From contig NW_003314277.1 of the NCBI RefSeq assembly GCF_000143415.4, positions 1,811,185-1,875,184 of the forward strand: a stretch of DNA of 64,000 bases, written 5' to 3'. Shown piece after piece: positions 12,262 to 40,630 of the stretch. The number at the start of each line of letters is the position of its first letter. Position 1 is the first letter of the stretch. This stretch comes from Selaginella moellendorffii. Taxonomy: Eukaryota; Plantae; Lycopodiophyta. The notes below the pieces were generated by a model. The model searched no databases and was not told the DNA's origin. It was given only the letters and a program-made list of their open reading frames with translations. The translations under genes were made by a program, and so were the position numbers.

Positions 12262-12547
12262 GGAGTGTCCGAGATGGACTCGAGTTGGAGTCCGAAGTGG
12301 AGTCCGAGATGGACCCGAGTTGGAGTCCGAAGTGGAGTCCGAGATGGACCCGAGTTGGAGTCCGAAGTGGAGTCCGAGATGGACCCGAGATGGAGTCCGA
12401 GATGGAGTCCGAAGTGGAGTCCGAGATGGACCCGAGATGGAGTCCGAGATGGAGTCCGAGATGGAGTCCGAGATGGACCCGAGATGGACCCGAGATGGAG
12501 TCCGAGATGGAGTCCGAGATGGAGTCCGAAGTCGAGACCGAGACCAG

Positions 12548-12579
<32 letters not shown>

Positions 12580-12670
12580 TCGGAACCGAGACCGAGACCG
12601 AGGCCGAGGCCGAGGCCGAGACCGAGCCCGAGCCCGAGTCCGAGTCCGAATCCGAGTCCGAGTCCGGAGC
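12262..12670 (+). repeat. LTR minisatellite (11-12 bp units GGAGTCCGAGAT/GGACCCGAGAT/GGAGTCCGAAGT, then CCGAG(A/G/T) hexamers), 5' LTR copy
   Basis: Directly visible tandem array that generates low-complexity ORFs in all frames. Confidence 0.95.
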
Positions 12671-15600: not shown

Positions 15601-16153
15601 AACCGTGATGCCATGGAGAGTCTAAAATATGGAATTGTCCATGTTAGACTATGTGGCATTTGGAAGGCTTGCAAAAAGGGAGGCCTTAGCAAGCTGAGGG
15701 ACAGAGTTCCTTCAAGGTTCCCAAAGACGATTCTAGGTAGTTTAGTACCTAGAAAGGCCAAGTGTAAATGGTTCATGGAACGCGCGAAATCAGAGTGGCG
15801 CAGCAGAAGCGTGGTCTTGAAGCTTGCCATGAGGCAAGGCTATCAAGGTTAGGGAAGTAGTTCCCGAGTGTTCAAAGAGAGGGCTTTGAACGAAAGTCGA
15901 TGGTCAAGGACTTTCACGCTTATGCAGGAACCATGTTACAGTGGTCGGAGGACTTGCCAAGCGAGATTGGCACGTCGGGGGAACAAATACCCTAGTTGAA
16001 GGTGATAACTTCAAAAAGGGTGGGCCATGGGGCCGAGCATAGAGGAGTCCATGCATGATCACAGACATGTCAAGTGAGAGGACTTGGCAGTGTGGAGGAA
16101 CTAGGTTCCTAAGTTGCGATCTGTAGCGCGCTTTAAAAATAAGATGGTGCACC

Positions 16154-16560
16154 GGCGTGGGGAGTCACGCCAGGCATCTTGTGTGATGCCGTCCGTAGAT
16201 GCATATACGGAGGTTGGGTTCGAGTCCCGACCCTCTAGTGCTTGGGTTCGAGTCCCAAATCACTAGGGCGTGGTGATGGTTTGGAATATGAGGACACTCA
16301 TATTTCGGTGGTCATGGACTCTCAGTGGGGAGACTGGTTTGGGCACACCGCCAAGCGAGGGATGCCTCGGAGTCGTGATGCACGGTTAGATTGCTTAGTG
16401 TGAAAGCTCAGCATATCTAACTTGAACGCTTTGGTGCAAGTGGCACCAAGGTCGTGGTGAGTGAGATGGGGACACCTAATCTCAGTTGCTATGAACCCTT
16501 GGCCGTAAGGGCTGGCTTGGGTGCACCGCCAAGTGTGGGGGATGCCCCCGGGGTTATAGT
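16154..16560 (+). other. Structured RNA-like module: five consecutive hairpins, two with TTCGAGT T-loops, plus a duplicated ~110 nt unit
   Basis: Stems at 16154-16171, 16173-16190, 16192-16211, 16212-16232 and 16233-16268. GGGTTCGAGTCCC occurs twice. A homologous block lies at ~25420-25665. Confidence 0.6.
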
Positions 16561-17576
16561 CAACAACTTGGAGGTCTAGAAGACCAAGTACCTCTTGGCA
16601 ACTCTGTTAAGGTGCCAAGGTGAGATCACTAGGTGATCTTATGGCCAGATAAGGACAAGGTCCTTGGTTGGCTAAGGAATGAAGTTCCTGGTTCAAAATG
16701 TTGAAATTGAACTGTTTAAGGTGGTGTGGCTTGGTCGTGATGACCAAGTGGGAAGAGCACATAAGGGAAATAAACTATGTCCGTGCGATGGCATAGTGAG
16801 TCCGAGGAAAGTAGTCTCTATAAAAGACCCATGGGAGGGTCACGAAGTTGGGCCGTGGATAGAGCCCATAGCAGAAGATGCTAAAGAGACGTACTAGGGG
16901 TGAACATCCTCCGGACTTGGCAAAGAAGAGTCTTTGCTATGGAACCGAAACAATACCTCAAGGAGGGAGGTAGAGATTCGATGTTGCTTGGTGCAACAAT
17001 CAATGGATAGGAGCAAAAGATGAGTGGCCAAGATAGGGCCGTGGAATCCCTTGGAAGGAATCCAAGTGACAAAGTTAGGCGAGGAACACTAATGTGTTGG
17101 ACGCTAACAAGTTGCGGGAAAGGAAGTGTGTTTCCAAGGAAGGATTCCGAAATGCTCCGATTTGGCGAAAGTGGAAGCTCCAAGGGAGGGAGCGGTAAGG
17201 TAGCCAAATGATAGGGCCATGAACAGCCCTAGCACAAAGTATGATAACTGGAACTTTGGCACGAAATAGAAGAGAGGATGATGGTGCCCTCGAGTAGAGA
17301 ACTTCCTAGGATGGGAAGTGGAGTTGCACAAAAGGTGCAAGGCAAGGTGTCGGAGACACCTAGGAAATTGACTCCAAGAAGTCAAAATTCAAAGTTCCAA
17401 AGTGCAAAGGTTATATCAATGGAAATTGAGACTACTCGAGAAGGACTAGTGGGATTGACTTAGAGAAGGGTCTCTAAGAGGTTTAGCGAGAACTAAACCA
17501 ATAAAAGGAGAAAACCACTATATGTGGTCCAATCAGTCTCTAAGTTGGAGAGACTACCCTCCTTAGAGGATATGCA

Positions 17577-17665
17577 CAAGGCATGGTGAGCCTTCAATGT
17601 CCCACCATTGACGAATATGGAGAAGGCATGGTGAGCCTTCAATGTCACACCATTGACAAATATTG
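17577..17665 (+). repeat. ~45 bp tandem duplication upstream of the PPT
   Basis: AAGGCATGGTGAGCCTTCAATGTC(C/A)CACCATTGAC(G/A)AATAT occurs twice. Confidence 0.9.
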
Positions 17666-17993
17666 GCTACGCGCCAAGGATGGAAATGGTAACACATGCG
17701 GGTGTTACTTTATAAAATGGTTCACCGTTCGATGAGGACATCGAACTTCGTCTATGGGTGGTGGAGTTGTGAGACACAAAATCCCTAGGCCCCAAAGTGG
17801 AGCCGGAAGGGCGCCACATGGTAGTGGCCGAAGCGAGAGCCAAACGAGCGTAACACGTTTGGACCAAAAGCTCCGACTTGAAAAGTCAAGAGCGGGAGTG
17901 GAACTCCTAACGAAGTGCTCGAGGAACGAGCACGAAGCGAGCAAAAGGCAAGGCTCCAAAAAGGGACCCAAAAGGACCAACACATGACACGTG

Positions 17994-18476
17994 GGAGTGT
18001 CCGAGATGGACTCGAGTTGGAGTCCGAAGTGGAGTCCGAGATGGACCCGAGTTGGAGTCCGAAGTGGAGTCCGAGATGGACCCGAGTTGGAGTCCGAAGT
18101 GGAGTCCGAGATGGACCCGAGTTGGAGTCCGAAGTGGAGTCCGAGATGGACCCGAGATGGAGTCCGAGATGGAGTCCGAAGTGGAGTCCGAGATGGACCC
18201 GAGTTGGAGTCCGAAGTGGAGTCCGAGATGGACCCGAGTTGGAGTCCGAAGTGGAGTCCGAGATGGACCCGAGATGGAGTCCGAGATGGAGTCCGAAGTG
18301 GAGTCCGAGGTGGACCCGAGATGGACCCGAGATGGACCCGAGTTGGAGTCCGAAGTGGAGTCCGAGATGGACCCGAGATGGAGTCCGAGATGGAGTCCGA
18401 GATGGACCCGAGATGGACCCGAGATGGAGTCCGAGATGGAGTCCGAGATGGAGTCCGAAGTCGAGACCGAGACCAG

Positions 18477-18508
<32 letters not shown>

Positions 18509-18635
18509 TCGGAACCGAGACCGAGACCGAGGCCGAGGCCGAGGCCGAGACCAAGCCCGAGCCCGAGTCCGAGTCCGAATCCGAGTCCGAGTCCGAGTCC
18601 GAGTTCGAGTCCGAGTCCGAGTCCGAGTCCGGAGC
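17994..18635 (+). repeat. LTR minisatellite, 3' LTR copy (233 bp longer than in the 5' LTR)
   Basis: The LTR-to-LTR offset is 5732 before the array and 5965 after it. Confidence 0.95.
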
Positions 18636-20379
18636 CTGAGAGGGTGAAAGCCCAAAGCGTTCGTCTCCCAGACCCTGGGGGGTTTGGTGAGCTCCAAAAG
18701 TATAGTAGGGGGAGGACTGCAGTGGAGCTAGTTTGGCCAGGAAAGGCCAGTTTGGCCCAGGAAGGCCGGACCCAGTGTTGGGTGATGAGCTGCCCACTGG
18801 GAAGTCCAAGACTAGAGTGAACACAGACCGACAAGCGGGGTAGCTTGGTGAAGTGTTCAAGAGCCGGCTCTAGTTCCCCCGGGAGATCGACTGGCCGATG
18901 CTCCCAGTCCAAGTGTGGGTGGCACTACCTACTTGGATACCTGGTGTGGCTCAACGGAACCCGCTCTAAGCCCATGGCTAGAGCACCCAAGGGCAGAAGG
19001 CGAGGAGAGTACCCAGGTGGCTCGCGTAAGGCCACGGTGTTCCGAAATGTTGTCCCAAAGGCTCAGACTGTGGAAAGGAAGAGGAGCAGTCCTCTGGGGT
19101 AGTGACCAAGGACACAGTCGTGTGGTGAGGAAGTCCCAGAGGACCGTGGGACTTAGTGGTCGGGCCTGTGGGTCTCGATCCAGTGGCAGTGTTGGCAAAC
19201 ACGGCCAGGGGCAGAAAGGGACTTAGTGGGGACTGACAGAGGGATATTGGGGAAGGCTATTCCCCTTGTCGGTGGGCATCCTAAGGATGCTAAGGAGTGG
19301 ATCTGAGATGACCACTCACGGATGGTTTGCCTAGTCTTGGAGAGCCAAGACTGTGATGCAAGTGGTATTGGACTACCAGTGTGGCAAAGGTGATTGGGCA
19401 TGGCCTTAGCGTAACAGGCTGCTATGTCGGTGGTACCTTTGAGTGTCGGTCATGGGATCGGACACGTGGAGCACTTGGACCAAGTGCAAATGTTGAGTGG
19501 CATGGATGCCATTCTCGGGGCTAGCAAGTCCCAAGTCCTGGATTGGACTTATGGAGGTTGTGAATGAGACTCCTCCAAGTGGTCAGAGGTGTGGTTAAGT
19601 GACTAAAGTAGAATGGAAAATTTAGTCGCTTACAACTATTATGTCTTAGATTTTGCATTTCTTTCTCTCTTTTAGCAGTTTCTTAACATCAAATGCTTTG
19701 TGATCAAAAGAGAGCATGCAAAAAGTTCCTCTGCAAGAAGAACCCCCAGGCTGCCTTTGATGTGTTCCAAAGGCGATGACTCTGAACTCAATATCCATGT
19801 TGAGTAGAATAAAGCTGCTTGGGTCCTCAGTAAACTTCCACCACCTCTCTTCAATTTCTTCTTGCCACTTTACAGTAAGTCACTGAAAAAATCTAAGATT
19901 CTCTAGAACTTCACTGGTTAAAACTTAGACAAGAAATCTAGAATAAAAAGCAAGCCTTTGAACACTTCTGTTTTTATCCTGGTCCTTTGATTTAAAACCA
20001 AGTGGGTTATGCTAGAACACCCTCCCTCGATATCAAGCTTTCAAGTAAATGTTTTAACTTTTAATTATGGATATCTTATGTTCCACTTACAGCTATAACT
20101 TTCAACTGATTATTTTAAAATTAATATTAAAATGCTTACTCTTGACACTAAAATGCTTAAAAATTCAATGTGCCCAAAATATTTTGTACTTCTCCCAGCG
20201 GAGCTGGGATCCCAGCTAGTTTACATTAATGTTTATAATTTATAAACTTCCTTAAACACTTCCATATATATTCTAAATATTTATAAAATCATTAGTTAAG
20301 ACTTTTTGGGATATCACCAAATGTTTATTCTAAACCACCATAGGGTAAAAGGTGAAAACCATGTGTACATAATATAATC

Positions 20380-25300: not shown

Positions 25301-26844
25301 AGAAAGTAACAGAACACAAGTTGTATGCTAAAGAAAGCAAATTTGCTCAACAAAAGGTAAAGTAAACAATCTGAAGGCATGCCAAAGGTAAGTTAATTAG
25401 CATGGGTTAGCTAAGTCGACCAGGTGTAGGGAACTACATTTGACTCCCTGCGGGGATATTAAATCCATAAATATATTTTACAAAGGTTAGGTTCGAGTCC
25501 CAACCCTCTAGTAAAGCAAGGCTAAATTCAAATCCCAACCCTATACTATGACATGGTGAGGTGAGAGGTATAGAGACACCTATAGTCCATTGTCATGGGC
25601 TCTTGGCTGGGGAGGTTAACTTAGGCATACCGTTAAGTGGGGGGATGCCCCTAGAGACATAGTCAACAAGTCGTAAGATTAAAAAGAGACATGTATCAAA
25701 CTTCTATGGGTGGTGGAGTTGTAGGAACTAACTTCCTGAGATGTTGTAGGCTAAAGGATCCCCAAAAGCACGACCGAAATGATAAAAAGTTCATCGAATA
25801 GGACCCAGTTCGAGATCAAGTTCGAGACTAACTTTGAGACCGAGTTCGAGACCAAGTCCGAGATCAAGTTTGAGACCGAGTCTGAAATCCAAGATCAGGT
25901 TCGAGACCAAGTTCGAGGTCGAGTCTGAAACAAAGTCCTAGATTTGGTCCGAAATCGAGTCCAAAATCGAGTCTGAGACTAAGTCCAAGGTCGAGTCCAA
26001 GACCAAGTCCGAGGTTGAGTCCGAGATCAAGTCCAAGACCAAGTTCAAATACCAATACAGGTCATGGGGTGAAAGCCTAAAGCGTGTGTCTCCTAGGGGG
26101 CAAGGGCGTTGTAGGGGGTTCCAAAAGTATAGTAGGGATAGTGATGTCTAATAACTAGTCTTGAAAGAACTCTCCAATGGTGCTTTCAAATTGACTTGAG
26201 GTTGAGATTGGGGCTTAGGGGCCTTGGGTGGAAGTGAGCATGGACTCGAGTGGTGTTGGAGGGGCCACCCAAGGAAGTGCTCAAGAGCAACTCTCACTCC
26301 TAGAAGGGAAACTCACTACAATGCTTCAGACTTATATGATGTGATGCTTTATTTGAATACCTTGTAGCTCATTAGTCCTCACCCTTCCTAGGGGATTAGG
26401 CCTTCCCTTCAAGATGGAAGTGGGGGAGTAAAAGTACCCATACCAAGCTGTTAAGCCATGATGTTTCCCCCCAGTATCCCAAAACAAGTGTTGCACTAAA
26501 GACTTGGGATTTAGAAGGACCCATGATCAAATATTGTTATACCAAAGGATATTAAGAACTTGGAAGTTTAGCGTGTTTGGCTGTTTATGCTTGTAGGGAG
26601 TGTAGTTGAACCTTAAGTTCAATTTAACCTGGAAAGGGGGATTGGGAAAGAATTTGGGAATCCGTGGATGGATGACTAACGCTTTGTTGCTTGTGTAGTG
26701 AGTTGTTGAAACCAAGTAAAATCAAGTAAGAGTTGGTACAATAAATGAGAACCTTAAAAAGGGAACTTAAATAAAGCCAAGACTATAGTGGTCAGATAAA
26801 TGAGGTAAGTTAGCAAATTGGAAAAGCAAAATTTATGGCTTACA
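22321..26844 (+). mobile_element. Old, internally deleted Ty3/gypsy (chromovirus-like) LTR retrotransposon
   Basis: LTRs at 22321-22886 (internally deleted) and 25720-26844. TSD CTTAG/CTTGG, degenerate PBS TAGTATCAAAGC at 22890-22901, PPT ATGGGTGGTGGAGT before 25720, and CCGAG hexamer arrays in both LTRs. Confidence 0.9.
22946..25365 (+). pseudogene. Disrupted gag-protease-RT; RNase H and integrase missing
   Basis: Gag LKQTGTIQEY, zinc knuckle remnant CFSCVEVGYFLKEC, protease IDIGASDNF (~24200), and RT motifs [33 protein letters not shown] and YIDDI. Many stops and frameshifts. Confidence 0.9.
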
Positions 26845-27138
26845 CTTGGTTGCGAACAATTGGCTAAAGATGCATTTACTCTCTTACATAAGCACACTTT
26901 TGAAACTAATATTAAAAGTATTTACATATAAGATGAAGGGCTTAGTGTAGTGGGGGTATGCCACAACTGGAGGAGTTGTCAAAAAAATTTTAAAATCTAT
27001 AAATGTCTATTTATAATCTTCAGATTATATGAAAGATAATGTGGATGACTTCAACAATGTTTGCAATAATGCAATATGATTAGAAAAATGATCAATAAAA
27101 CGTCTAAGATATTGCACCTTACCATAATGGTAGCAACA

Positions 27139-27628
27139 CTCGGGGTGGTCACTCTTATATAACCGTATATATCATCTGCATGTACAGATTGGGGTTATTT
27201 TGGGTGCAAACCATACATATACATACAGGCCTCAGGGTTGAGTTTAATTTGAAAATTTTCGTACGTACGAGTAGGGGAGGAGGTGGAGCTCCTCTAGGGC
27301 TCTCTATAGTAGCAAGTTGTAGAGGGCAATAGATCTCAAGCATAGTAGGTATGGAGCGTGATGTTATTGTGTATGTAGAGGATGGGGATCAAAAGAAACT
27401 TGTGGGTTTCGTCAGGGTTTAAAGGAAATATATATATGCTTTATGCAAAAATAACAAAATATTCCACGTATATATAAGAATTGGGGGTTTATTTAAGATT
27501 TGAAAAAATACTTATATGTAAGGGTATGGGGCAAATTATGAACAACAAAAAAAGTATACTAGGCCCCCTATTCTAAACTTCCAGAACGCAGATGATATAT
27601 AATGCTTATAAAGAGTGACCACCCTGAG
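27139..27628. mobile_element. MITE (~490 bp; hAT- or Mutator-like)
   Basis: ~45 bp TIRs CTCGGGGTGGTCACTCTT...ATCATCTGC / GCAGATGAT...AAGAGTGACCACCCTGAG. Flanking duplication TAGCAACA (8 bp), or GTAGCAACAC (10 bp) if the ends move inward by 1. Confidence 0.85.
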
Positions 27629-29856
27629 TAGCAACACTAGAAATATCCACCTTAGCTTTTAGTATCTAAAAGAACTTAAAAGCAAGTATTATTTATTGTT
27701 GATAATTATTTGGTGAACTAATAGCTTTACCCTAAACAATTTAAGAGATTAGTAGTGTGAAGAAAAATGGTACATATTTGAGATAATCATATTATTAAAT
27801 AAACATTAGTCAATGCTAAATTGAATATTCCCTAAGGTTCATACACCCTAATACTTTGAGACTTTTGAATAACAAGCCAAGATCTTATGAATGGATATCA
27901 AGAAAATGTTAAAGAAGGGTCTTTTGGTGACTGATACCAAATTAAATTTTTTATTGGACAAGCATCTTTAGTTGGAACAGAATGATACATTACAATCTTA
28001 ACCCCATAAAATAAATCAAGGTTGAAAAAATTAACATACTTCTTCTTGAGTTGGTCAAATGCAATAGCATAAAGACCATCTAAAGGGTCTAGAAAGAGAA
28101 TAAAAGAGTAAGAAGGAAATTCAATAAATAATAATGAAAAAAATGAAAGGAATAAAAGAGACATAAGGGAGTATGAGACAAGTTAAAAATTTGATTTAAC
28201 ACTACCTTATAATCACCAATACATACAACTAAGTTCACATTGTCTCACCTATTTGCATGTGTACTGCCATTGTTATAAAGAATGAAGATTGGCTCTACTA
28301 CACAATATAAATGTAAATAGGATATAGCAATAGGCTAAACAATAGAAAATAAACTCAAACCCATATTAACTAACACATAAAAGATAACATGAGACTTTTT
28401 ATTATAAAAATGAATTTAGAAAGTGAATATTGTATAAACTTTTGACAAGTGAACCCTTTAGTGGTAGGATGGAGGGGTCACTGACTTATTTGTAAAAAGA
28501 CACTCCATTACTTCTATAACTTTTTATTTTTTGAAAGAATCTTTACATTGACACCAATATGATATTGTTGAACCAAGGCCTTCATTTAGTAATGGAAAAT
28601 GCTAATTTGGGAAACATTGATACATATGGACAATTTTATCACACATCAATAGCACACATCACAGCCATATCCTCATCCTTATCTTCATCATTGAACACAA
28701 GCATTAGTAACATCAACTTCCATCAAAACTAGATTATCTTTTATGGGAAATAGAGTTGAAGCACATCTATCTATAAATGGGAGAAATGATGTTTTATAAC
28801 ATTATATTATTCAAAGAGTGTTGGCAAGGGTGGTTCAACTAGCATATGTATAAATCCCATAAGATTTTGACAAAGCATTAGTTATAAAATTCTCAAATTG
28901 ATTCACTTTGACATATTTAGTTCTGCACAAAGCAAGAAGCTTTTAAAGCAAATACTAAGTTACATAATGAACTTAAATGGCACTTGACAAAGATGATACA
29001 CTTGTTAGAAGATATTATTATAATTATCAATATGTCCAACTGCACATTTAAAAACATCTAGGAGAAGATTCCAATTTGTATGGGTGGTTGCACTTAGACC
29101 ATTATAACTATTGCAATACTATCTTTGAAGACAAGTGGAAAACTTATACAAATGCTAAATATCATCCCAAAAAATGATAAATGGAAATCATTACAAATTA
29201 ATCAACCCAATGGTACACATCATTGCTAGAATTCCTATAAATGAAATATAGCTAGCCACAAAAATTGATTGTAAAAACAATTAAGTCTGATTGTTCAATT
29301 GTAACCATATAATATCAAACAATTGCACCAGCTACAAGAGGGGCTACTATAAGAATATTTAAAGAATATAAAAGCTAAATCTAAACAAAAATAAATATCA
29401 AATCACTCATTAGACAATTAAAGTTACACTATATCTTTCTGCTAATCCAAATAATTTGTTATGCATTGCATGTAGCAATGCTTGGTTTGCTTAATAGTAG
29501 TATTATTCCTACTTATCAATCTAATTGATCAAATAAAAATTTAGAATTATAAATATGTTTATAATTTATAAATACAAGATTAATTTTATTGCATATCAAG
29601 TTTATAAATTATAAACATGTTATAAATTATAAATACAAAATTATTATAAATTAATAACAAGCGTTAGATAGTAAAATATCCTAGAATTTTCAAGCAATTT
29701 CTAAATATATTCACTAAGCAAACCAAAAATTTTTAATAACCATTTCAAAAACACAAGCAATGCCAAAAAGTTGATGTTTCAATAACCATTTCAAATACAC
29801 ATATTAAAATATTATTAGAATATTCCCTTGGTTCCACAGGATACTTTTTTACAAGA

Positions 29857-31569
29857 CTAGAAAAATCTGGCGTTATAGTCTTCCTCCACAAATCCAGCAA
29901 GAATGACAGCATCCTTTTGCCAGCCGAGAAAATCCTTCAGTTTTTCCGGTGGCGCCGCAAATGCCGTCGAGAGTGTCTCCTCGTCTAAAGCTTTCAAGAC
30001 CGAGCTCGCACCTAAAACGTCACAAAGTTAGCGTAGAACAAGGGAGAAACACCAAACGTACCACACAGGAACTGGGGATTATTGGGTGCCGCCGACGTGC
30101 TGAATCCCACAAACTCGAGAGCACCCTCGCGAGAAGCAATCTGGCTCATCGGGAAGTAGCGAGGAACAAAGACGATGGTGCCCTCCTTGACGGACTTGTT
30201 GAGCGCGCTGGTACCGTTTGGAAAAGAGATCTGGAAGACGCCTTGGCCTTTGGTCACTAGAGCGATTTCGGCTGCTCGTGGATTCCAGTGTGGAGCAAGA
30301 ATAGCGGCCTAGACAAAAACAAGGAAGGAAAATGGTTTGTGGAGAAACGGATGAAACCCGGAAGACTTACGGGTTTCAGCGAGACTGCAAAAACTCCAAC
30401 GCTAGCGTTTCGCAACGGAGCGTACTGGCGTCCATCCACAGCAATTGTCCGGCCGTTGTCGTTCTCGAAGTCGGGCTTTTTCTTAAAGAGGTTGAAAGGC
30501 TTGGCAGGCGAACTGGACTTGCCGCCACCATTGTCAAAGAGCTCTGACGAAAAGCTGGAAATGTAGTTCAGCCAGGACCAGGACCAGGAGGCTCTTGAGC
30601 TCTTTGATTTCCTGGAAACAAGCTCCTGGAACCGTGCCTGCGATGTGTAGACGATCGGACCTTGGTCCTGGTTGCTCAGCACTTCAATCACTTCCTCGGA
30701 CGACACCTGAAAGAGTTTTCAGAAAAGTTTCGAGGAAAATCCAGGCTACTTGACCTTGAAGGACGCAGCTAGAACGTCCGAGTCGAAACCTGAGAGAATG
30801 GTCAGTGGATTTGTTCCACCACCAACAAACGCGGACTGCCAGAGAAAAGTCTCTAATCAAAACAATGATGCTAAGCAAATCAGCTTACTTGGAAGACTCC
30901 AGTCTCGAGACTTTCTGAGGTGTCGAACATGCCAAAAACTCGCAGCCTCTGTGCCTCATCCGTGTTAAGGATGTAAAAGACGAGGCCTCCAGGAATCACA
31001 TAGATATCTCCAGCTTCAAGGTCTTGCTGGTTCAATCCATCTTCCACCCATCCAAGTCTCATCTTTCCTGAAAAGAAACGAAGAAAAGAAGCTCCTCGAC
31101 CAAGAAAAAGATCCCAAGTACCTTTGAGAACGTAGAGGACGCAAGGAGCATCGATGTACTGCGGCAGGAGGAGCGCCTTGGGCTCCATTGTGATGAAGTT
31201 AACACCAATGTTGTTCGATCCCAAAACGCCAGCCTTGTCCTTCCTGCCGGGAAGAACGTGGATCTTCCCCGCCTCGGTGCTCACTATCTCCACAGGCTTC
31301 TCAAGAACAAATGGGTTCCTGCCCTTGTGCTTCGAGCTGTGCCCTTCATCGTCGTCCTCATCGCGATGTTTGCCTCCTTCGCGATCATCCTCATCGTGAT
31401 CTTTGCCTCCTTCGCGATCATCGTCCTCACCCTCGTCTTCGCGATCGCGATGCCGCGGCTCTCGATCGCCATTGGACGCCGCATCGAGCCGGAATCCTCC
31501 CCGCGCGACGACGGCCTGGAGAACCAGTAGCAATGCTAGGAGAACTAGCCAGATCCGAGGAGAAGCCAT
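29857..31569 (-). CDS. Vicilin-like (bicupin 7S globulin) storage protein, multi-exon
   Basis: Signal peptide and acidic N-terminal repeats. Cupin motifs FITMEPKALLLPQYIDA, LEAGDIYVIPGG, PFNLF, PHWNP, FVPRYFPMSQIAS and LEFVGFSTSA. Short GT-AG introns; stop at 29857-29859. Confidence 0.92.
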
Positions 31570-31720
31570 GATATTCTGGGCAAGAATAGACGATCAGCAC
31601 CGAAATCTACCCCAAGATCGTCCAGACTGGAAGAGCGCTTACCTCAAGAACACGCGGGAGAAGAAAGATGGGGTTCCATTCTCCTGTCCAATTGGCCTTC
31701 TTATCAAAGCTTACGCTTCG

Positions 31721-31731
31721 TGCATGCATGC
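31721..31731. promoter_or_regulatory. RY repeat (CATGCATG) ~150 bp upstream of the vicilin ATG
   Basis: TGCATGCATGC. RY is the established B3-domain (ABI3/FUS3/LEC2) site in storage-protein promoters. Confidence 0.55.
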
Positions 31732-31905
31732 GTAGAGCCGCCAATTGGCGCCACTATCACCGTCGGATCCAGGCCATGATCAACGGTTGAAATTTACATA
31801 AATTCCTTCCTCTGTACAAGGAATGAAAAAAATAAAATAAAAACTCTCTTTTCCACAGAACTTTGGTTCTTTGGATCTTTGGCGCTGTGATTTTGAGAAG
31901 ATCGA

Positions 31906-33524
31906 TCAAGCTTTCTGTGGCTCTGTCAAGAATCTGTTCACAGTAGCAACTATGGCATCGATCTCGTCGTTGGAAAATCTCTGCTGGATGTTTTGGATAA
32001 TCTGCTCGCGAGAAAAAAAGAAAAAAAGCCATCCTTTAGAGCCGATCTGATGCGAGAAAAAACTTTCACGTACCAAGTAGAGCTGGACTGGATCGGGCCT
32101 TAAGTTTGCTATCTGGATGCGTTCCAGCGGGCAAAGTCGACGGATCAGTGGCTCTCGAGAAAGTTTTCTCAAGTCTTCGATGCTCTGCAACGCTGCCGGG
32201 GTCTGGAGGAGATATCTACGGACCTGTCGAGGAGAGCCAACCATCATAAACACATCCAGACTCCTCGGGTTGCGAGCATACCAAAACTTCCGACTGGCTG
32301 ATGCCATCCCTGCTTTGCAGAAGATCGAGCACTTCAAAGTTGCTCAGTCGGCCACAATCAGCTTCGAGACTGCCAGGAAAAACGAAGAAATCCATCACAA
32401 ACTTCAACGAAAGGAGGAAAACTCACTTACACTTTTGTGTTGAGTGGTTCTCTCCTTGCTGTTGGCTCTTGCTTATCGGGCTGGCGGACAGAAATCTCCA
32501 CAGTAGACTCACCGAGAGAAGGACTGTCCGTTTTCAACCGTTTCGGCTGAAGGTGACGAGAACCCAGCAGTTTATTGGTGGAGCCGCCAGCCGTTTTGAT
32601 GTCACTCGAGAATTCCTTGAGTGTCTCGGCAACTTCCTGTTCCTCCACTCTCGCAGTAGCACTTTCATCCATCTCCTCGCCCTCGATCGCGCTGGAAACG
32701 CCCACCAATCTATCCGGCCGTTCGGGATTGTCATCTTCAAGCCATGGAGCTCGAGAGCAACCTTGCGAGCTTTCAGGAGGAAGCGGCGGTGGCTCGTCGT
32801 CGTCTTCCTCCTCCTCGTCATTGTCACTCTCCGTCTCGGTCTCCTCCTCAAGCACCTCGTCCTCCAAGTCGTCCTCCATAAATCTCTTCCTGTGAATCAC
32901 CTGTAGAGAGCTCCAGCGAAACCTCTCCATCCGCTCGAACGCCACCACTGGCTCGTAGTGAGCAAACGAGAACCCATGATAGTTGCTATGGTAGACGAGC
33001 CGCATAACGTTGTCACTGTGATCTTCCTCGTCGCCCAAGATCTTCCCAGTGTCCGCGAGCCAGATCTGTATCGGCCTCCCCAGGAGCTCTTGCAACCAAA
33101 ATGCGCAGAAGTGATCCCCCCAGAGCCCCCCACACGAGGCGCTCAGCCGCATCTTACACAAGTAGACCAGCGCGGCGTCCTTCTCTGTGAGCTTGATCCT
33201 CCCCAGCTCTGGGTGGAGCTCCTGCAAATTCTCCAGCACCAGGAAATTCTCCATCCACTCCATCGCCTTGGGGTCCTTGCGGTGGAATTTCTCCCTGTAC
33301 AAGCTCACCATCGCCCGCCGGAGGCACACGGAGCTCTCGTAGGCCTCCTCCTCGCCCAGGAGATAGAGCACGGAATCGAAAAGGCAGTCGCCGGCGCTGT
33401 AGGGGTAGCCCACGATCCGGCGCAGCCCCTTGCTGCGCAGCACGCGATCAATGTAAGGAACCTGGAAAATCCGCCGCGCGGGGCGCAGCCAGGAAGAGCC
33501 CTCGTCCTCGTCGATCGCGCCCAT
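31906..33524 (-). CDS. OTU cysteine protease - acidic linker - RNA polymerase III subunit RPC9/C17 (Rpb4 family) fusion, ~475 aa
   Basis: Exons 33524-32431, 32369-32282, 32223-32074 and 32001-31906 join in frame via GT-AG introns of 61, 58 and 72 nt. OTU motifs AGDCLFDSV, LWGD and RLVYH...AHYEPV. RPC9 motifs KVLEADCGRLSNFEVLDLL, VRRYLLQTPA, ERIQIANLRP and IIQNIQQRF. Confidence 0.75.
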
Positions 33525-33786
33525 GAACCCTAGCACAGGGTTTTAGATTTTAGGGCTTCTGTGGCCATTTTCCCGCCCCGGTCTTTTAGGGCACGGAAAT
33601 AGTACAGAGCATTAGGGTTAGGTCTACCTAAAAATATAACGCACGACCTTTGCCTGGCTCCTCATGTTCTTTTGTCCTCCAAAGCCATGCACCTACAAAT
33701 ACTACTAGTTTACAACGATTCGTGCTATAAAACCACACAAATGGATTCAATCGATCGATCAAACTTTCAAACCATCTATCTCTAAG

Positions 33787-35035
<1,249 letters not shown>

Positions 35036-35162
35036 GAAGAGGTTGATATAAGGTGGCGAAATCGGAAAGTCAATAAAAGTGTAGGTAAATGCAATAAGAT
35101 ATTATCTCGGCCTAACTTCATCACTTGCTTCTATCATTTTTCCTTTCTTCTTGATCAAGAGG

Positions 35163-35705
35163 ATGTGCTTCAAGCTGTTTTTTGCATCTTTTTCCATCTT
35201 TGTGACAATGATCAAGATTGGCCACTGTGATCTTCTCAATTGTCTCTTGCCACGGTCGCCTTCGTCGAGAAACTTGGTGTACTACATCCATGGGATCCGG
35301 GTTCCAGCGAATTCTTCCCAGGTACAAAGCATCTTGCCCTTTCAAGGCCAGCAATTTCTGGTCCAGCGACCTTTCCCAAACGGCTATGGAGAAGTTTTCA
35401 GGAACAAGATCACCGAGAGCTACGAGTACGACTCTCGCCAGATCGGAGTGTACCAAGGAAGCTACCCGACAGTCCGAGATGGATCCGTGGTCTCGCTGCG
35501 CGGGACGATCTCACTCGCGACCAGCGATGGCGTTCGTGCCCGGTTTAACGTGAGGGGCCCCTACGATTTCTCGCAGCTCACGTCCATCATGCCAATCTCG
35601 GGAACTCTCGGCGGTCGAAGCTTTCTGGGGATCCAAAATGCGACCGTGCTCTTCGCGTATGGACGAAATGGTGTGGTTAAAGGCCAGGCAAAGATCTGTG
35701 TGTAG
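35163..35705 (+). CDS. Divergent dirigent-like secreted protein (single exon)
   Basis: Signal peptide. LVYYIHG, YGEVF..KITE....S..IGVYQGSY and MPISGT.G..F.G resemble dirigent motifs I-V. Confidence 0.55.
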   Translation: MCFKLFFASFSIFVTMIKIGHCDLLNCLLPRSPSSRNLVYYIHGIRVPANSSQVQSILPFQGQQFLVQRPFPNGYGEVFRNKITESYEYDSRQIGVYQGSYPTVRDGSVVSLRGTISLATSDGVRARFNVRGPYDFSQLTSIMPISGTLGGRSFLGIQNATVLFAYGRNGVVKGQAKICV

Positions 35706-35934
35706 AAGTTTGACCGTGGTTGACTTTAATTGACAAGCTTTGAGTTTGACTAACCGTGGACCTTGTAAATTGACTATGTTTGACTGCGTGGGAATGTAAT
35801 GTTCCATGAATGCGCCCCACCTACATTGCTCAGGTCTTTAAACGAGACCTGTCAGAATCGAAGGAGGTGTATAGAACAATAAAGGGAAAAGAAGAACAGG
35901 AGATTGGAGTTTGGAGTTTCCAAGCAAAGCGCCA

Positions 35935-37297
35935 ATGGAGAAAAATCTTCACCGCCTTGTCTTGGGCCTGTATCTCCTCAATGCGTGGGGAGGAGCGAGC
36001 GCGAGCCTGGTGCCCGCATTGTTCGTGTTTGGCGACTCGACGCTGGACACGGGCAATCTCAACTACAGGCCCAACACCGTGCATTTGATCCGGACGGAAG
36101 AGCTTCCCTATGGCCGCGACTTCGTTCCTCCGGGGCCGACTGGGCGAGCCTCCAATGGCAAGCTCGCCACAGATTTCTTGGGTAAGCCCACGATCGATCC
36201 CGTCCTCTATCTCTCTCTTTCTTTCTCGGGAGTTTTTTGATCGATCCTCTTGATCAGCGGGGTTTCTGGGGCTTCCCACTCCAATTGACGATCTCGAGCC
36301 GGACGCGCAGGGGCGAAAGCTCTTCCAAGGGATCAACTTCGCGGCCGGAGGCTCCGGCATTCTTAATGGCACAGGACTGGTACGTACTATAGCGACAGGA
36401 TCGTCAGGAAGTTTGGTTCTTTACTGTTCTTGAGAAAAGTTTGAAAAGTTTGGTCTCTTTGTCGTGATTCCCAGACGACCGTATCCCTGTCGCAGCAGCT
36501 TGATGCCTTTGAGGGCTCCATCGCCAGCATCAACAAACTCATGGGATCACAGGAATCATCCAGGCTCCTCGCAAACTCGCTCTTTCTCCTCAGCACTGGG
36601 AACAACGATCTCTTCAACTACGTCTACAATCCAAAGGCGAGGTTTCGCTACTCCCCGGAGTCTTATAACACTCTTCTCCTCTCCACGCTTTCCAGAGATC
36701 TCGAGGTCTGTAAAATCACAAGCACATCGATACGTATGATCGATCTTTGGTTGTTTTTCTTTAGAGACTTTACAGCTTGGGAGCTCGAAAGCTCGTCGTC
36801 CTCTCGCTTGGTCCCCTCGGATGCACGCCACTCATGCTTAATCTTCTCAACTCGGACGGCTCCTGCATTGGCGAGGTGAATAATCAAGCCAAGAACTTCA
36901 ACGCGGGCTTGCAATCGCTGCTCGCCGGGCTGCAAACCAAACTTCCCGGGAGCCGGCTGCTCTACGCAAACGCGTACGACATTCTCTTCAGCGCAATCCA
37001 GGACCCCCGAAAACACGGTAAGTTCTCCAGAAGCTCTTCGTCTCGTTTCGAGCAAAAGATTTGATTGATTGATTGATCATCGGTGGTTTTGTTCGAGCAG
37101 GCTTTCGATACGGGAACGTTGCTTGTTGTGGATCTGGGAAGTTTCTGGGGTCAGTTTTGCAGACTTGCAGTGGCCGGACTTCAGTGTGCGCTGATTCGAA
37201 CGAATACGTCTTTTGGGACATGGTGCATCCTACACAAGCCATGTACAAGCTCGTCACAGACGAACTCTATGCCGAGCTTGTGAAATTCATCCTCTAA
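35935..37297 (+). CDS. GDSL/SGNH esterase-lipase (5 exons)
   Basis: Motifs FVFGDSTLDTGN, PTGRASNGK, GINFAAGGSG, GNND, LGPLGCTP and FWDMVHPT. Confidence 0.95.
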
Positions 37298-37403
37298 AAT
37301 CTAATACATATGTTAATGATCATATAGTATGAACTTGCATTGAAATGTTAAGAAAGCATTGAGATATTTCATAATCATATTATTGTTTGGGGTGGCCGTA
37401 TTT

Positions 37404-37745
37404 TTATTTCGAGGGATTCAATGGTTTGCTAAAGTACTCGTTGAGACCGGGCATGATCTGCGTCTTCTTATCACGCAAGAACCTTCGCAATGGATGGTTG
37501 TGATAGACTTCTCCCTAGCTGTGGTTATCCAGCCGTCCATACTTTCTATCGTCTTTGTTCACCCTTTTTACAGATCAAATTACCATGAACTCTACCATGA
37601 GGAGAAAAGATTTTTACCTCACTTCTGGATCAGTGATGAGCTTTCTTGCGGAGAGATAAGCCGCCAATCCAACGGCGCCAATCACGAAAACTCCCAATGG
37701 ATACACTTCCGGCTTGAGCCAGCGTTTCCTAAACGTAGCGTCCAT
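37404..37745 (-). pseudogene. B12D: B12D/NDUFA4-like mitochondrial protein with an in-frame premature TAG
   Basis: Exon 1 MDATFRKRWLKPEVYPL...DPEVR; exon 2 VNKDDRKYGRLDNHS*GEVYHNHPLRRFLRDKKTQIMPGLNEYFSKP. TAG at 37517-37515. Confidence 0.8.
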
Positions 37746-37786
37746 TCCTTTAGCTTTTCCTTGGCCACTAGAACTTTTTGAACGCG

Positions 37787-37842
37787 GTATATTCCTGTAT
37801 ATTCCAGCTCTAAGAATATACCATCTGGAGCTTAGAATATTC
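37787..37842. promoter_or_regulatory. Four P1BS-type GNATATNC sites upstream of B12D
   Basis: GTATATTC at 37787 and 37797, GAATATAC at 37814, GAATATTC at 37835. Confidence 0.6.
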
Positions 37843-37998
37843 CTGCGAGACATCAGACTTTCCGGAAAGGAACTTTAAACAACCAGAAAATAAAAATAAA
37901 TTTTAAACAGTCTCTTGAGTTTGATCATTGTTATTGCCACGAACAACACTCGATCGATCCAGAAAGAGGAATCGATGGATCAAGCAAGAAAATTGTGC

Positions 37999-38298
37999 TC
38001 ACTTGGGCCGCGATCCCTTCTTCTTCCCGGCCGCGGCAGCGCTGGCGGCAGCCTTGGTCTTGACCGGATTGATCGAGGCGGCGGCGACGTCTGGATCGAG
38101 CCACTTGAGAGAATGGCGATTGAAGAAGGGCCAATTGGGCACGGTGATGAGCACAGTGAGGATCACACCTCCGGCGTAGACGAGCATCATCAGCTGGAAC
38201 GATGTGCGGAAGTAGCCGGCGAGGAACGCAGCAATCGCCCATCCCACCAGCATGTACTGCATCAGCTCCTCGGCCAGCTTCTGCCCCTTCCAATCCAT
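37999..38298 (-). CDS. SPCS1: Signal peptidase complex subunit 1 (SPC12)
   Basis: MDWKGQKLAE, two transmembrane segments, VPNWPFFNRHSLKWLDP. Confidence 0.92.
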   Translation of the reverse strand: MDWKGQKLAEELMQYMLVGWAIAAFLAGYFRTSFQLMMLVYAGGVILTVLITVPNWPFFNRHSLKWLDPDVAAASINPVKTKAAASAAAAGKKKGSRPK

Positions 38299-38663
38299 CG
38301 CGGAGATCGATCGATCGATCGAGAGAGAGAGAGCGCAAGAGAAAGAGATCGCGCAGCGCGAGCGCCAAACAAACCCTAGCCCCGAGAAGCCCTAAAAAAG
38401 ATCTTGTCGAGGAGAGGGAGTATAGGCTAGGGTTTCGTGACGAGCGGGGGCGGCAGTGGAGCTTTCGGCGCAGCGGCATTGGCGATTCTCGCGTCGGCAT
38501 CATCGATCCAGGCTCGCATCTGTAAGCGCGCCTCGAATTTTGGGATAGGTTTTAGTGCTGCTACTCGGGAAGAATCGTCCGATTCCAACGATAGATCGAG
38601 CTGCTGTACAGGGAGCCGAGGGGATTCCATTCCTTTCTGATTTTCGCTTGCATTCTTTCGTCC

Positions 38664-40630
38664 ATGGCGGGGCTGCTTGGCGGTGATCCTGCTCAGTTGA
38701 ATTTGGATGCCGGTGGCTCGTCGGCCATTTTGCAAGGCAAACTCGAGGAGGCCGACCACTCCAGCACAAATTGGTACTTTCCCAGGGAAGAACTTGACAG
38801 GACATCGCCATCGCTCCGTGATGGAATCGACTCGAGAAGGGAGACTTACTTTCGAAAGTCCTACTGTACTTTTTTACAGGACCTCGGCATGCGACTAAAA
38901 GTGTAAGCTTGTTCTCTTCTCCTTCGTCTTGTTCTTCTCGGATTTTTCTTTCTTTTCTTCTCTCACTCAGACTCATTGACGGTTTGATTTTTTTTCTTGT
39001 TCTTTCGTTCTTTGCAGCCCACAGGTGACTATTGCCACCGCAATTACATTTTGTCATCGTTTCTATCTTCGGCAATCCCATGCAAGAAACGATAGATTTG
39101 TAAGTTCTGAGTTACTGTTGACGCCTAGCTGATACTGATAAGCTTCGTACCGATCTAGATGATTGCTACTGTGTGTATGTTCTTGGCGGGGAAAGTGGAA
39201 GAAACCCCTCGCGTCTTGAAAGACGTAATATATGTTTCTTATACTCTTAGGAATAAGAAGGACCCTTCTGCAAATAATCGGATCAAACAAAAGGTCTGAA
39301 ACTTTTTCTCTACTGGTTTTCTCTGCTGCTACTGCTGAAAATCTGCGTGGAAAACTCTCTCCAGGATTTGTACGAGGCACAAAAGCAGCTTGTGCTGTAC
39401 GGGGAGCGCCTCGTCCTCACTACACTAGGATTCGATCTAAACGTTCACCATCCATACAGACCGCTGGTGGCCGCCATAAAAAAGTTCAACGTCTCTCAAC
39501 ATGCGCTGGCTCAAGTTGCGTGGAACTTTGTCAATGATGGGTAAGCTCTCGCACACCAGTAGGAACTTCAGTCTCGACTGGAGTGTTGGAGTCCGTGTTG
39601 TTTCATCACTTTGATGAGATGGGAATGAAGCAGTGGAAGGGATGTGCAGGCTACGCACATCGCTCTGCCTGCAGTTCAAGCCGCACCACATCGCCGCTGG
39701 TGCCATTTTCCTGGCTGCAAAGTTTCTTAAGGTGAAGCTGCCGATCGATGGTGAGCGGGCTTGGTGGCAAGAGTTTGATGTCACGCCTCGGCAACTGGAA
39801 GGTACGTTCTCTGGACTTTGATAGACTCTAGTTTCCATTGTTCTTTTTTGTTTCATTTTCATGGTCGTATTGAGAAAGGGATGCACGTCTCCTATTTTTT
39901 TGCAGAAGTCAGCAATCAAATGCTGGAACTCTACGAGCAGAACAGGGCGGGACAAAACTCTCGAAGTGACGCGCTGGAAGATCCAAACGCAAGCGACAGG
40001 AACGGGGTGGAGCCGGCAGCAAACGGCCACCTCCCGCCGGAGGAGCAGCGACGGGAAGCCGCCCTTCCACCACGCGAGGTGGAAAACAACAGAGATGGCC
40101 ACTACGAGATGGAGCGGGCGCAAGCACGGCCAAAACAGGTACCCGAGACTCAGAATGGTTACGACAGTAGAACCAGGGGGGAGGCCGGCGATCGAAGAAG
40201 GGTGGCGGATCAAACCGACACCGCCCGTGACGAAGTTCACCACAAAGACTTTGCGGACAGCAACTTGGATGATAGAGTGGAGAGAGTACAGCAACAACAA
40301 CAGGATTCCAGCAAGAGGAAACGAGAGATGATCGAGAAGAAGTGGTCCAAGCCCGAGGAAGGCGAGCTTCCTCCAAGCCGGGGCGAGGATCAACAGCAAC
40401 ACTACCATTCATCGTCACGGCCGACTGGAGAGAAACGCTACGATTCTAGCGACCGGGACTATCGTAGCAGCCGAGAGTCTGGACAGGATTATCGCCACCA
40501 CAGCAGCGACCACCACGGAAGTTATCACTACCAGGGTGGCGGCGGCGAGAACCGGAGCCGGAATCACTCCAAGGATCGAGGAGAGTGGCAAGAGCGGGAT
40601 CAAAAGAAGAACCGGCACAAGTACTCGTGA
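38664..40630 (+). CDS. CYCT1: Cyclin T1 (P-TEFb subunit), multi-exon
   Basis: WYF.REEL...[79 protein letters not shown]. Confidence 0.93.

Follow-up and report, generated by a model that had tools for sequence, protein, structure and literature searches.

An OTU protease reading frame of likely Helentron origin spliced in frame to the RNA polymerase III stalk subunit RPC9 in Selaginella moellendorffii

RPC9 is a conserved and normally stand-alone subunit of RNA polymerase III (Pol III), the enzyme that makes tRNAs and 5S rRNA. A locus in the lycophyte Selaginella moellendorffii raises the question of whether this subunit can instead be produced as the C-terminal part of a larger protein that begins with an OTU cysteine protease. 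The locus lies in a stretch of 64,000 nucleotides (contig NW_003314277.1, positions 1,811,185 to 1,875,184, RefSeq assembly GCF_000143415.4), referred to below as the window, and all coordinates are given as positions within it. A reading of the letters alone (the original prediction) had proposed that a long OTU open reading frame (ORF) is joined in frame, through a 61-nt phase-2 intron, to three exons encoding a complete RPC9 domain, forming a novel chimeric protein. We conclude with high confidence that the chimeric gene and its mRNA are real, and we present below the evidence for the gene, for the nature and origin of its parts, and for and against the protein that it would encode.

The chimeric gene occupies the minus strand from 33524 to 31906 and comprises four coding exons, all on that strand, which together give a spliced coding sequence (CDS) of 1428 nt and 475 codons. 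Exon 1 (33524..32431) runs for 364 codons plus 2 nt with no intron or stop inside, and consists of three parts: an OTU part (33524..32940), which begins with the annotated ATG (33524) and encodes the OTU cysteine-protease domain (residues ~21–195); a linker part (32939..32439) of ~165 residues, in which Glu, Asp and Ser abound and disorder is predicted; and the last 8 nt of the exon (32438..32431), reading ACA AAA GT, in which Thr363 takes the position of the RPC9 Met1. The exon ends ...AAC ACA AAA GT|GTAAGT, and intron 1 (32430..32370; 61 nt, GT..AG, phase 2) connects it to the RPC9 exons. Exon 2 (32369..32282) encodes the N-terminal helices of RPC9 (LEADCGRLSNFEVLDLLQSRDG...) and aligns with human RPC9 residues 3–21; exon 3 (32223..32074) encodes the middle of the domain; and the coding part of exon 4 (32001..31906) encodes its C-terminal helices, terminating in a TGA stop at 31908..31906. 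These are separated by intron 2 (32281..32224; 58 nt) and intron 3 (32073..32002; 72 nt), both GT..AG and phase 0. The 3′ untranslated region (UTR) extends over 31905..31727, as defined by the ends of RNA contigs (31732 and 31727). Across the intron 1 junction the translation reads ...NTK-V-LEADCGRLSNFEVL, and the full 475-aa translation is letter-for-letter identical to RefSeq XP_024531737.1 (LOC112346614). The predicted coordinates, donor and junction translation are all confirmed.

Contigs from four public runs, belonging to four studies, were placed on positions 31200–34300. Each of the four runs yielded one contig that skips exactly 32002–32073, 32224–32281 and 32370–32430, corresponding to all three predicted introns, and the gaps in these spliced contigs read CT..AC on the plus strand, equivalent to GT..AG on the minus strand. 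The junction 32431^32369, for which the original prediction had proposed an RNA check, was crossed by one contig in each run, with a shorter side of at least 90 nt. Single contigs spanned 31732..33484 (1586 nt), 31727..33404 and 31952..33404, while the fourth run contributed two contigs, 31857..32798 and 32806..33520; the longest single contig thus extends from the 3′ UTR to a point 40 nt inside the start of the ORF. The contigs of the four runs covered none of the intergenic flanks, and the runs holding the gene comprised 24–57 Mb of contigs, whereas DNA runs from the same organism amount to ~200 Mb. Because of the spliced contigs, the small total assembly size and the bare flanks, the runs were taken as RNA. 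Since the three junctions are precisely spliced in contigs of four studies, a fusion mRNA exists. Additionally, the variant letters in the contigs coincide exactly with sites that differ between the two haplotypes of the organism, and therefore both alleles are transcribed.

The allele of the other haplotype is XP_024539513.1 (LOC112349395), which is likewise 475 aa long and is encoded on a different scaffold. The fusion gene has the same peroxidase and cupin neighbours on both haplotypes, and on this basis the model on the second scaffold was assigned to the other haplotype. Only these two allelic copies of the locus are known, making it single-copy, and tblastn found no second copy of any of the three protein parts in the window. 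RefSeq names both alleles only as "uncharacterized protein", and both models are automatic predictions. The proposal of a novel chimera therefore holds insofar as the gene exists and is transcribed into a single spliced mRNA, and needs qualification insofar as both alleles were already RefSeq models.

A comparison of the two haplotypes, covering 1428 coding nt and 775 nt of introns, UTR and flanks, revealed how the frame has been treated since they diverged. The whole CDS contains 13 substitutions (5 synonymous and 8 non-synonymous) and no indels, whereas the 775 non-coding nt contain 7 indel events; 12.9 indels would have been expected in the CDS (P about 2.5e-6). For the linker alone, no indels were observed against 4.5 expected (P = 0.012). 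Substitutions affect 0.9% of the CDS versus 1.9% of the non-coding sequence (Fisher P = 0.047). The introns are ~3% diverged, and intron 3 is the most diverged stretch, with 7% substitutions and 2 indel events; the OTU domain is 0.5% diverged, with 2 synonymous changes and 1 non-synonymous change. The dN/dS ratio between the haplotypes was computed on 13 changes in all, which are too few to conclude from. When sequence of the same composition was shuffled, a 164-codon linker was free of stops in 0.035–0.06% of shuffles. The whole 475-codon frame is being kept.

Turning to the C-terminal module (residues 363–475), the Pfam family RNA_pol_Rpb4 (PF03874) matched residues 360–475 with 35.8 bits and the whole protein with 27.9 bits, both above the cut-off of 25.6; the match spans profile positions 46–114 of 116, and the other allele scored 33.9 bits. 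In HMMER comparisons with PDB sequences, the best match was human RPC9 (E 2.6e-6), and S. pombe Rpc9 (0.31) and S. cerevisiae C17 (0.35–0.41) accounted for the remainder of the four best matches, all of which are RPC9; no Rpb4 appeared among the PDB matches up to E = 10. The ESM Atlas model of residues 365–474 superposes on an RPC9 cluster with a template modelling (TM) score of 0.84. The module also carries the N-terminus K-V-L-E-A...L-S-N-F-E-V that is characteristic of RPC9, known as C17 in yeast, CRCP in human and NRPC4 in plants. It is ~16 residues shorter than human RPC9, the shortening lying after the first helices and before the middle of the domain. In the HMMER alignment, in which S. 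pombe Rpc9 was also aligned, Val365 pairs with human RPC9 Val3, which places Thr363 (ACA, 32438..32436) where Met1 would be. Going upstream in frame, the first AUG encountered is M285, 78–80 codons before the RPC9 start; it does lie in the linker, as had been proposed, and the distance of ~70 codons originally given was too short. We conclude that the module is a complete RPC9 domain, encoded by three exons and without a start codon of its own, on both of which points the original prediction was correct. Whereas the RPC9 proteins known so far, Arabidopsis NRPC4 among them, are small subunits that stand alone (PMC4417161), the Selaginella domain is neither a small stand-alone polypeptide nor equipped with its own start codon, and instead follows a 362-residue N-terminal extension.

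The N-terminal module (residues ~21–195) contains Cys47 within the motif GDCLFD (residues 45–50; codon 33386..33384), the motif GLWGD (residues 133–137) and His189 within HYEP (residues 189–192; codon 32960..32958), thereby retaining the Cys and His motifs that the original prediction had recognized. The Pfam family OTU (PF02338) matched residues 43–190 over its full profile (positions 2–128 of 128). An AlphaFold model built from the family alignment had a predicted local distance difference test (pLDDT) score of 82.9 and a predicted TM score (pTM) of 0.78. When this fold was compared with the PDB using Foldseek, the top 46 matches were all OTU domains, with probabilities of 0.96–1.00 and TM scores of up to 0.68 by target, and they included nairovirus vOTU, human DUBA/OTUD5, OTUD1 and OTUD3, and yeast Otu2; structural matches of the module in the Atlas were OTU clusters. 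The alignment of its relatives displays the family signature (V)GDCLFD ... GLWGD ... HYEP, and the Selaginella module retains all invariant or near-invariant family positions (L34, G45, D46, C47, F49, S65, Y121, M125, W135, G136 and D137). In a profile search, GLWGD pairs with a WGG motif and HYEP with HYNSL, the motif at the C-terminal end of the OTU domain in yeast Otu2, where it holds the catalytic His. Compared with cellular and viral OTU deubiquitinases (Otu2/OTUD6, OTUD5/DUBA, OTUD1, OTUD3 and vOTU), the module shares the fold (Foldseek probability 1.00, E from 4e-5) and the placement of the Cys and His motifs at equivalent positions; it differs in showing only 14–21% identity and in a Cys box that reads G-D-C rather than the usual D-G-x-C. 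Judged by its motifs and predicted structure, the module is a divergent OTU-fold protease with its catalytic motifs in place, belonging to a subfamily that is barely reached by Pfam.

The linker that connects the two modules (residues ~196–362) has a pLDDT below 50 over residues 198–401 in the full-length model. It contains an acidic run (217–247), a TAGG motif (311–314) and a sequence PKRLK resembling a nuclear localization signal (327–331); TAGG (~32583–32594) and PKRLK (~32532–32546), both on the minus strand, occur in each of the two alleles. Pfam gave no credible family for the linker, the sole match being PBP1_TM with 15.5 bits versus a cut-off of 27.8. The Gly-Gly of the linker resembles a site cut by ubiquitin-type proteases.

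The origin of the OTU exon was approached through its relatives. An exhaustive HMMER search of 1.84 billion representative proteins returned 32 matches to the OTU module, about 25 of which are true relatives; cellular plant OTU enzymes were absent from the 32 matches. The true relatives are short orphan ORFs with 25–40% identity, except for two fragments of ~60% identity (P0029 and P0031), which derive from AT-rich metagenome scaffolds and are not Selaginella orthologues. Long WD40 proteins (P0003, P0013, P0014, P0017, P0021 and P0023) were rejected as spurious repeat matches to residues 146–194. The closest relative, P0002, is 36% identical and is encoded on a 1.1-kb contig. Relative P0004 is encoded on two ocean-metagenome scaffolds (L002 and L003), with same-strand DUF6570 (a weak match), PIF1 and Exo_endo_phos genes ~3–5 kb downstream; P0027, on an unrelated JGI scaffold (L009), is followed by same-strand Helitron_like_N, PIF1 and Exo_endo_phos; and P0005 (L004) has an RPA-like DUF223 ORF upstream. 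The transposon-linked relatives show only 28–31% identity to the Selaginella OTU. One further relative, P0007, comes from Taxus chinensis, and this OTU family therefore occurs in land plants; no transposon genes are listed beside P0007.

An OTU gene upstream of RepHel is described as a recurrent cargo of Helentron/HLE2 elements, and both DUF6570 and the endonuclease are reported to be almost confined to HLE2 (PMC11417382, PMC4067079). The Selaginella ORF resembles the OTU ORFs of these elements in its GDCLFD, GLWGD and HYEP motifs and in its lack of introns; it differs in being a single copy with two alleles, in having lost its stop and in being spliced to a host gene. Because the relatives are exclusively orphan ORFs, and because two independent ones lie upstream of Rep/helicase/endonuclease genes, a Helentron (HLE2) origin of the OTU exon is likely on this comparative evidence. 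The suggestion that the intronless exon came from a mobile element was thus well placed, with both of these relatives preceding Helitron_like_N, PIF1 or endonuclease genes in an HLE2 layout. Separately, scaffolds L002 (7001–13421), L003 and L009 (7496–16366) appear to carry intact Helentron-like units of unknown eukaryotes, ~6–9 kb long and with their genes on one strand in L002 and L009, which may serve as references for this OTU subfamily.

The explanation that we favour, and consider probable, is that the locus is a real, single-copy, lineage-restricted chimeric gene in which a Helentron-type OTU ORF acts as the 5′ coding exon of an RPC9 gene. We propose that an intronless OTU ORF of the kind found in Helitron-like elements was placed at the 5′ end of a host gene encoding RPC9, a subunit of the Pol III stalk, and became its first coding exon. 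Lacking a stop of its own, this ORF reads through the acidic linker of ~165 residues, predicted to be disordered, as far as a donor situated 8 nt past the position of the former RPC9 start codon (now ACA), from which the 61-nt intron joins it in frame to the three RPC9 exons. The presumed promoter is the short flank with telo-box-like motifs that the gene has in common with the divergent peroxidase gene. Translation from 33524 would yield an OTU domain linked to RPC9 by a flexible acidic tether; the C-terminal module could dock on RPC8/C25 in the Pol III stalk, and the tethered OTU domain might then reach nearby subunits or chromatin proteins and strip ubiquitin or a related modifier from them. 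We regard it as reasonably likely, if less so than the chimeric gene itself, that the full-length 475-aa protein is the main product. That this protein is an active, Pol III-tethered deubiquitinase appears rather unlikely. A reading in which the fusion is the sole RPC9 and every Pol III stalk bears an active transposon-derived protease, trimming ubiquitin or a related modifier at Pol III or its chromatin, is improbable.

Several observations weigh against this explanation. The runs that yielded the spliced contigs come without an RNA record, although RNA is the only reasonable reading of them. The Pfam OTU score of the N-terminal module, 19.8–22.4 bits, falls under the gathering cut-off of 23.3, so that of the expected pair of Pfam domains PF03874 is found above its cut-off and PF02338, despite full coverage of its profile, below. 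The Selaginella copy departs from Helentron/HLE2 elements in having no RepHel nearby and no recognizable ends: tblastn with the ORFs of L002 and L009 found nothing credible as a Rep, helicase or endonuclease remnant in the 64-kb window, and no transposon ends were identified at the locus. Because the window holds no RepHel remnant and only two allelic copies are known, we infer that exon 1 is a solitary relic of a Helentron-type element and not part of a resident element. No orthologue from another species is available by which the fusion might be dated. The remaining points concern the start codon and the RPC9 half of the gene, and each of them is bound up with an alternative explanation.

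At the 5′ end, the ATG at 33524 is covered by no RNA contig from the four runs, whose contigs end at 33520, 33484 (where adapter follows), 33404 and 33404, and the RNA-like runs contain no sampled 31-mers from 33525–33664, the 140 nt upstream of the ATG. The absence of upstream words means that the 5′ UTR is very short or that transcription starts inside the ORF. Moreover, with all frames counted, the first AUG past 33524 is M72, which is in frame, lies downstream of Cys47 and has the better start context, with G at −3 versus T for the first ATG. On the real fusion mRNA, translation may then begin at an internal Met (M72 to M285), producing a long-extended RPC9 without Cys47 for which the OTU region serves only as leader or spacer; consistent with this, all contig 5′ ends fall within the first 120 nt of the ORF, and the end at 33484 gives way to adapter as at a true fragment end. 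However, one contig reaches 33520, only 4 nt from the ATG, and because contigs usually fail to reach the true 5′ end, the likeliest arrangement is a very short 5′ UTR. Codons 1–71 differ between the haplotypes by 2 synonymous and no non-synonymous changes, with no indel; the Cys box and all conserved family positions are intact even though the nearest relative is only 36% identical; and the initial MGA... is aligned with the N-terminus of P0002. On balance, internal initiation strikes us as unlikely.

The 5′ flank and presumed promoter of the fusion gene (33525..33640, minus strand) is common to the divergent peroxidase gene, with 262 bp between the two ATGs. It contains the telo-box-like motif AACCCTA in sense orientation at 33613–33619 and in antisense orientation at 33526–33532, where it abuts the ATG, as well as a TATA-like run at 33628–33637. 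A TATA-driven start near 33600 was judged unlikely, since words from 33525–33664 occur in no RNA-like run. A mini-exon starting from an upstream ATG 44 nt before the annotated one (donor CT|GTGCTA), which would skip the OTU exon and generate a stand-alone RPC9, was also considered and rejected as unsupported, because the contigs do not show the joint, the donor is a weak one and the RNA runs lack the region. Across the window, the telo-box core AACCCTA occurs 17 times versus 6.05 expected, a count reached in 0 of 100 shuffles; some copies form close pairs on opposite strands, for example at 38372/38428, 47500/47545 and 63734/63782.

The second alternative, which we consider about as unlikely as the first, is that the fusion is an extra and possibly decaying copy of RPC9, neutral or with a function outside Pol III, while Pol III uses a stand-alone RPC9 encoded elsewhere; in a variant of this scenario, a fragment of an RPC9 gene may have been acquired beside transposon sequence. 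Of the two C17/NRPC4 paralogues in Arabidopsis, one was detected in purified Pol III and the other was not (PMC4417161), and a spare copy in Selaginella is for this reason a live possibility. The RPC9 exons are the most diverged of the exons between the haplotypes, at 1.5% versus 0.5% for the OTU domain, with 4 non-synonymous changes and 1 synonymous change, which gives a hint, from five sites only, of relaxed constraint on this part. The domain is also short and divergent, the Pfam match is confined to the C-terminal half of the profile, and a word-index protein search with residues 362–475 (at E 1e-3 and E 10) produced 4 word-sharing candidates, none of which scored. The same search cuts the other way: no word-sharing stand-alone relative of 63–200 aa was found in a collection that includes the RefSeq proteome of the species, a result that tests for a distant copy only weakly but indicates that there is no recent or close parent copy. 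Further points against a dispensable duplicate are that the locus exists as a single copy flanked on both haplotypes by the same host genes, that its frame is free of indels, that runs from several studies show its expression and that a full RPC9 fold is predicted.

A third alternative, which we rate as quite improbable, is that the locus gives two products, with retention of intron 1 yielding OTU plus linker and RPC9 being released separately, either through an internal start or through self-cleavage at the Gly-Gly of residues 313–314. Read-through of the intron 1 donor gives GTG TAA, so an mRNA retaining the intron would encode a protein ending at residue 365 and comprising OTU and linker only, and TAGG is present in the linker of both alleles. 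The OTU-fold proteases of arteriviruses and tymoviruses cleave their own polyproteins, which provides a precedent for this scheme. The contigs of all four runs, however, contain the spliced form only; contigs drop rare isoforms, and some retention of intron 1 would be compatible with them. In addition, M285 is the last in-frame AUG ahead of the RPC9 domain, the linker bears no resemblance to ubiquitin, and the idea of self-cleavage is pure conjecture. Finally, an assembly or gene-prediction artefact, for which nothing speaks beyond the automatic nature of the RefSeq models, is practically eliminated by the occurrence of the same structure on two independently assembled haplotypes and of the exact junctions in contigs from four studies.

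The chimeric gene sits in a very compact three-gene block of peroxidase, fusion and cupin genes, whose order is unchanged on the other haplotype (L001). Divergent from the fusion gene, a class III peroxidase gene with a signal peptide and an FHDCF motif occupies 33787–35035 on the plus strand. Transcript contigs of paralogous peroxidases cross-map to 34015–34054 in all four runs, their sequence being dissimilar on either side of this stretch. On the other flank, a cupin/germin-like gene (30880–31569, minus strand) begins ~160 bp past the 3′ ends of the fusion RNA contigs. A perfect 12-nt palindrome, CGCCAATTGGCG, is located at 31739–31750, a few bases before these 3′ ends (31727–31732); it may be linked to 3′ end formation or may have arisen by chance. 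Farther away, the haplotypes differ by 6–14% in substitutions and by large indels over 26000–29200, versus ~1% in the genic region 30000–39600, the former probably being a block rich in repeats and in AT whose structure differs between the two haplotypes. Positions 12000–20000 have a high G+C content and a strongly positive GC skew (0.19–0.26).

Host–transposon fusions are known from primate SETMAR, which combines a SET domain with a mariner transposase, and from the chimeric transcripts of plant Helitrons. The Selaginella gene resembles these in that a coding exon of likely transposon origin is joined in frame, by splicing, to the exons of a host gene and is expressed from the host locus. It differs in that the transposon part would be an accessory protease and not the transposase, placed at the 5′ end and replacing the host start codon, and in that the host partner is a core subunit of the transcription machinery. 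A deubiquitinase that acts while bound to a large machine also has a parallel in Otu2, which works on the 40S ribosomal subunit. We found no literature on RPC9 fused to an enzyme domain and know of no such case. Nor was any paper on an OTU–RPC9 fusion found, in keeping with the original view that the architecture is undescribed. Each half of the gene is of a known type, and the recruitment of transposon exons by host genes is a known process, whereas the OTU–RPC9 combination is undescribed in the papers found. Because the OTU domain scores under the Pfam threshold, look-ups of domain architecture would miss this fusion.

What the fusion means for Selaginella depends on its product. If it is a spare RPC9 copy, or if its OTU part is untranslated, the locus would be a lineage-specific chimeric gene of an ordinary kind, and of modest interest. 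If the whole protein is produced and incorporated into Pol III, it would be a natural deubiquitinase-type enzyme wired to a nuclear RNA polymerase, and a case in which an accessory gene of a transposon, rather than its transposase, has been domesticated as the first exon of an essential host gene. Were the fusion in addition the sole RPC9, with an active OTU domain, it would constitute a built-in regulator of Pol III stability with no known counterpart in other organisms. The fusion also offers a handle on the role of the OTU proteases of Helitron-like elements.

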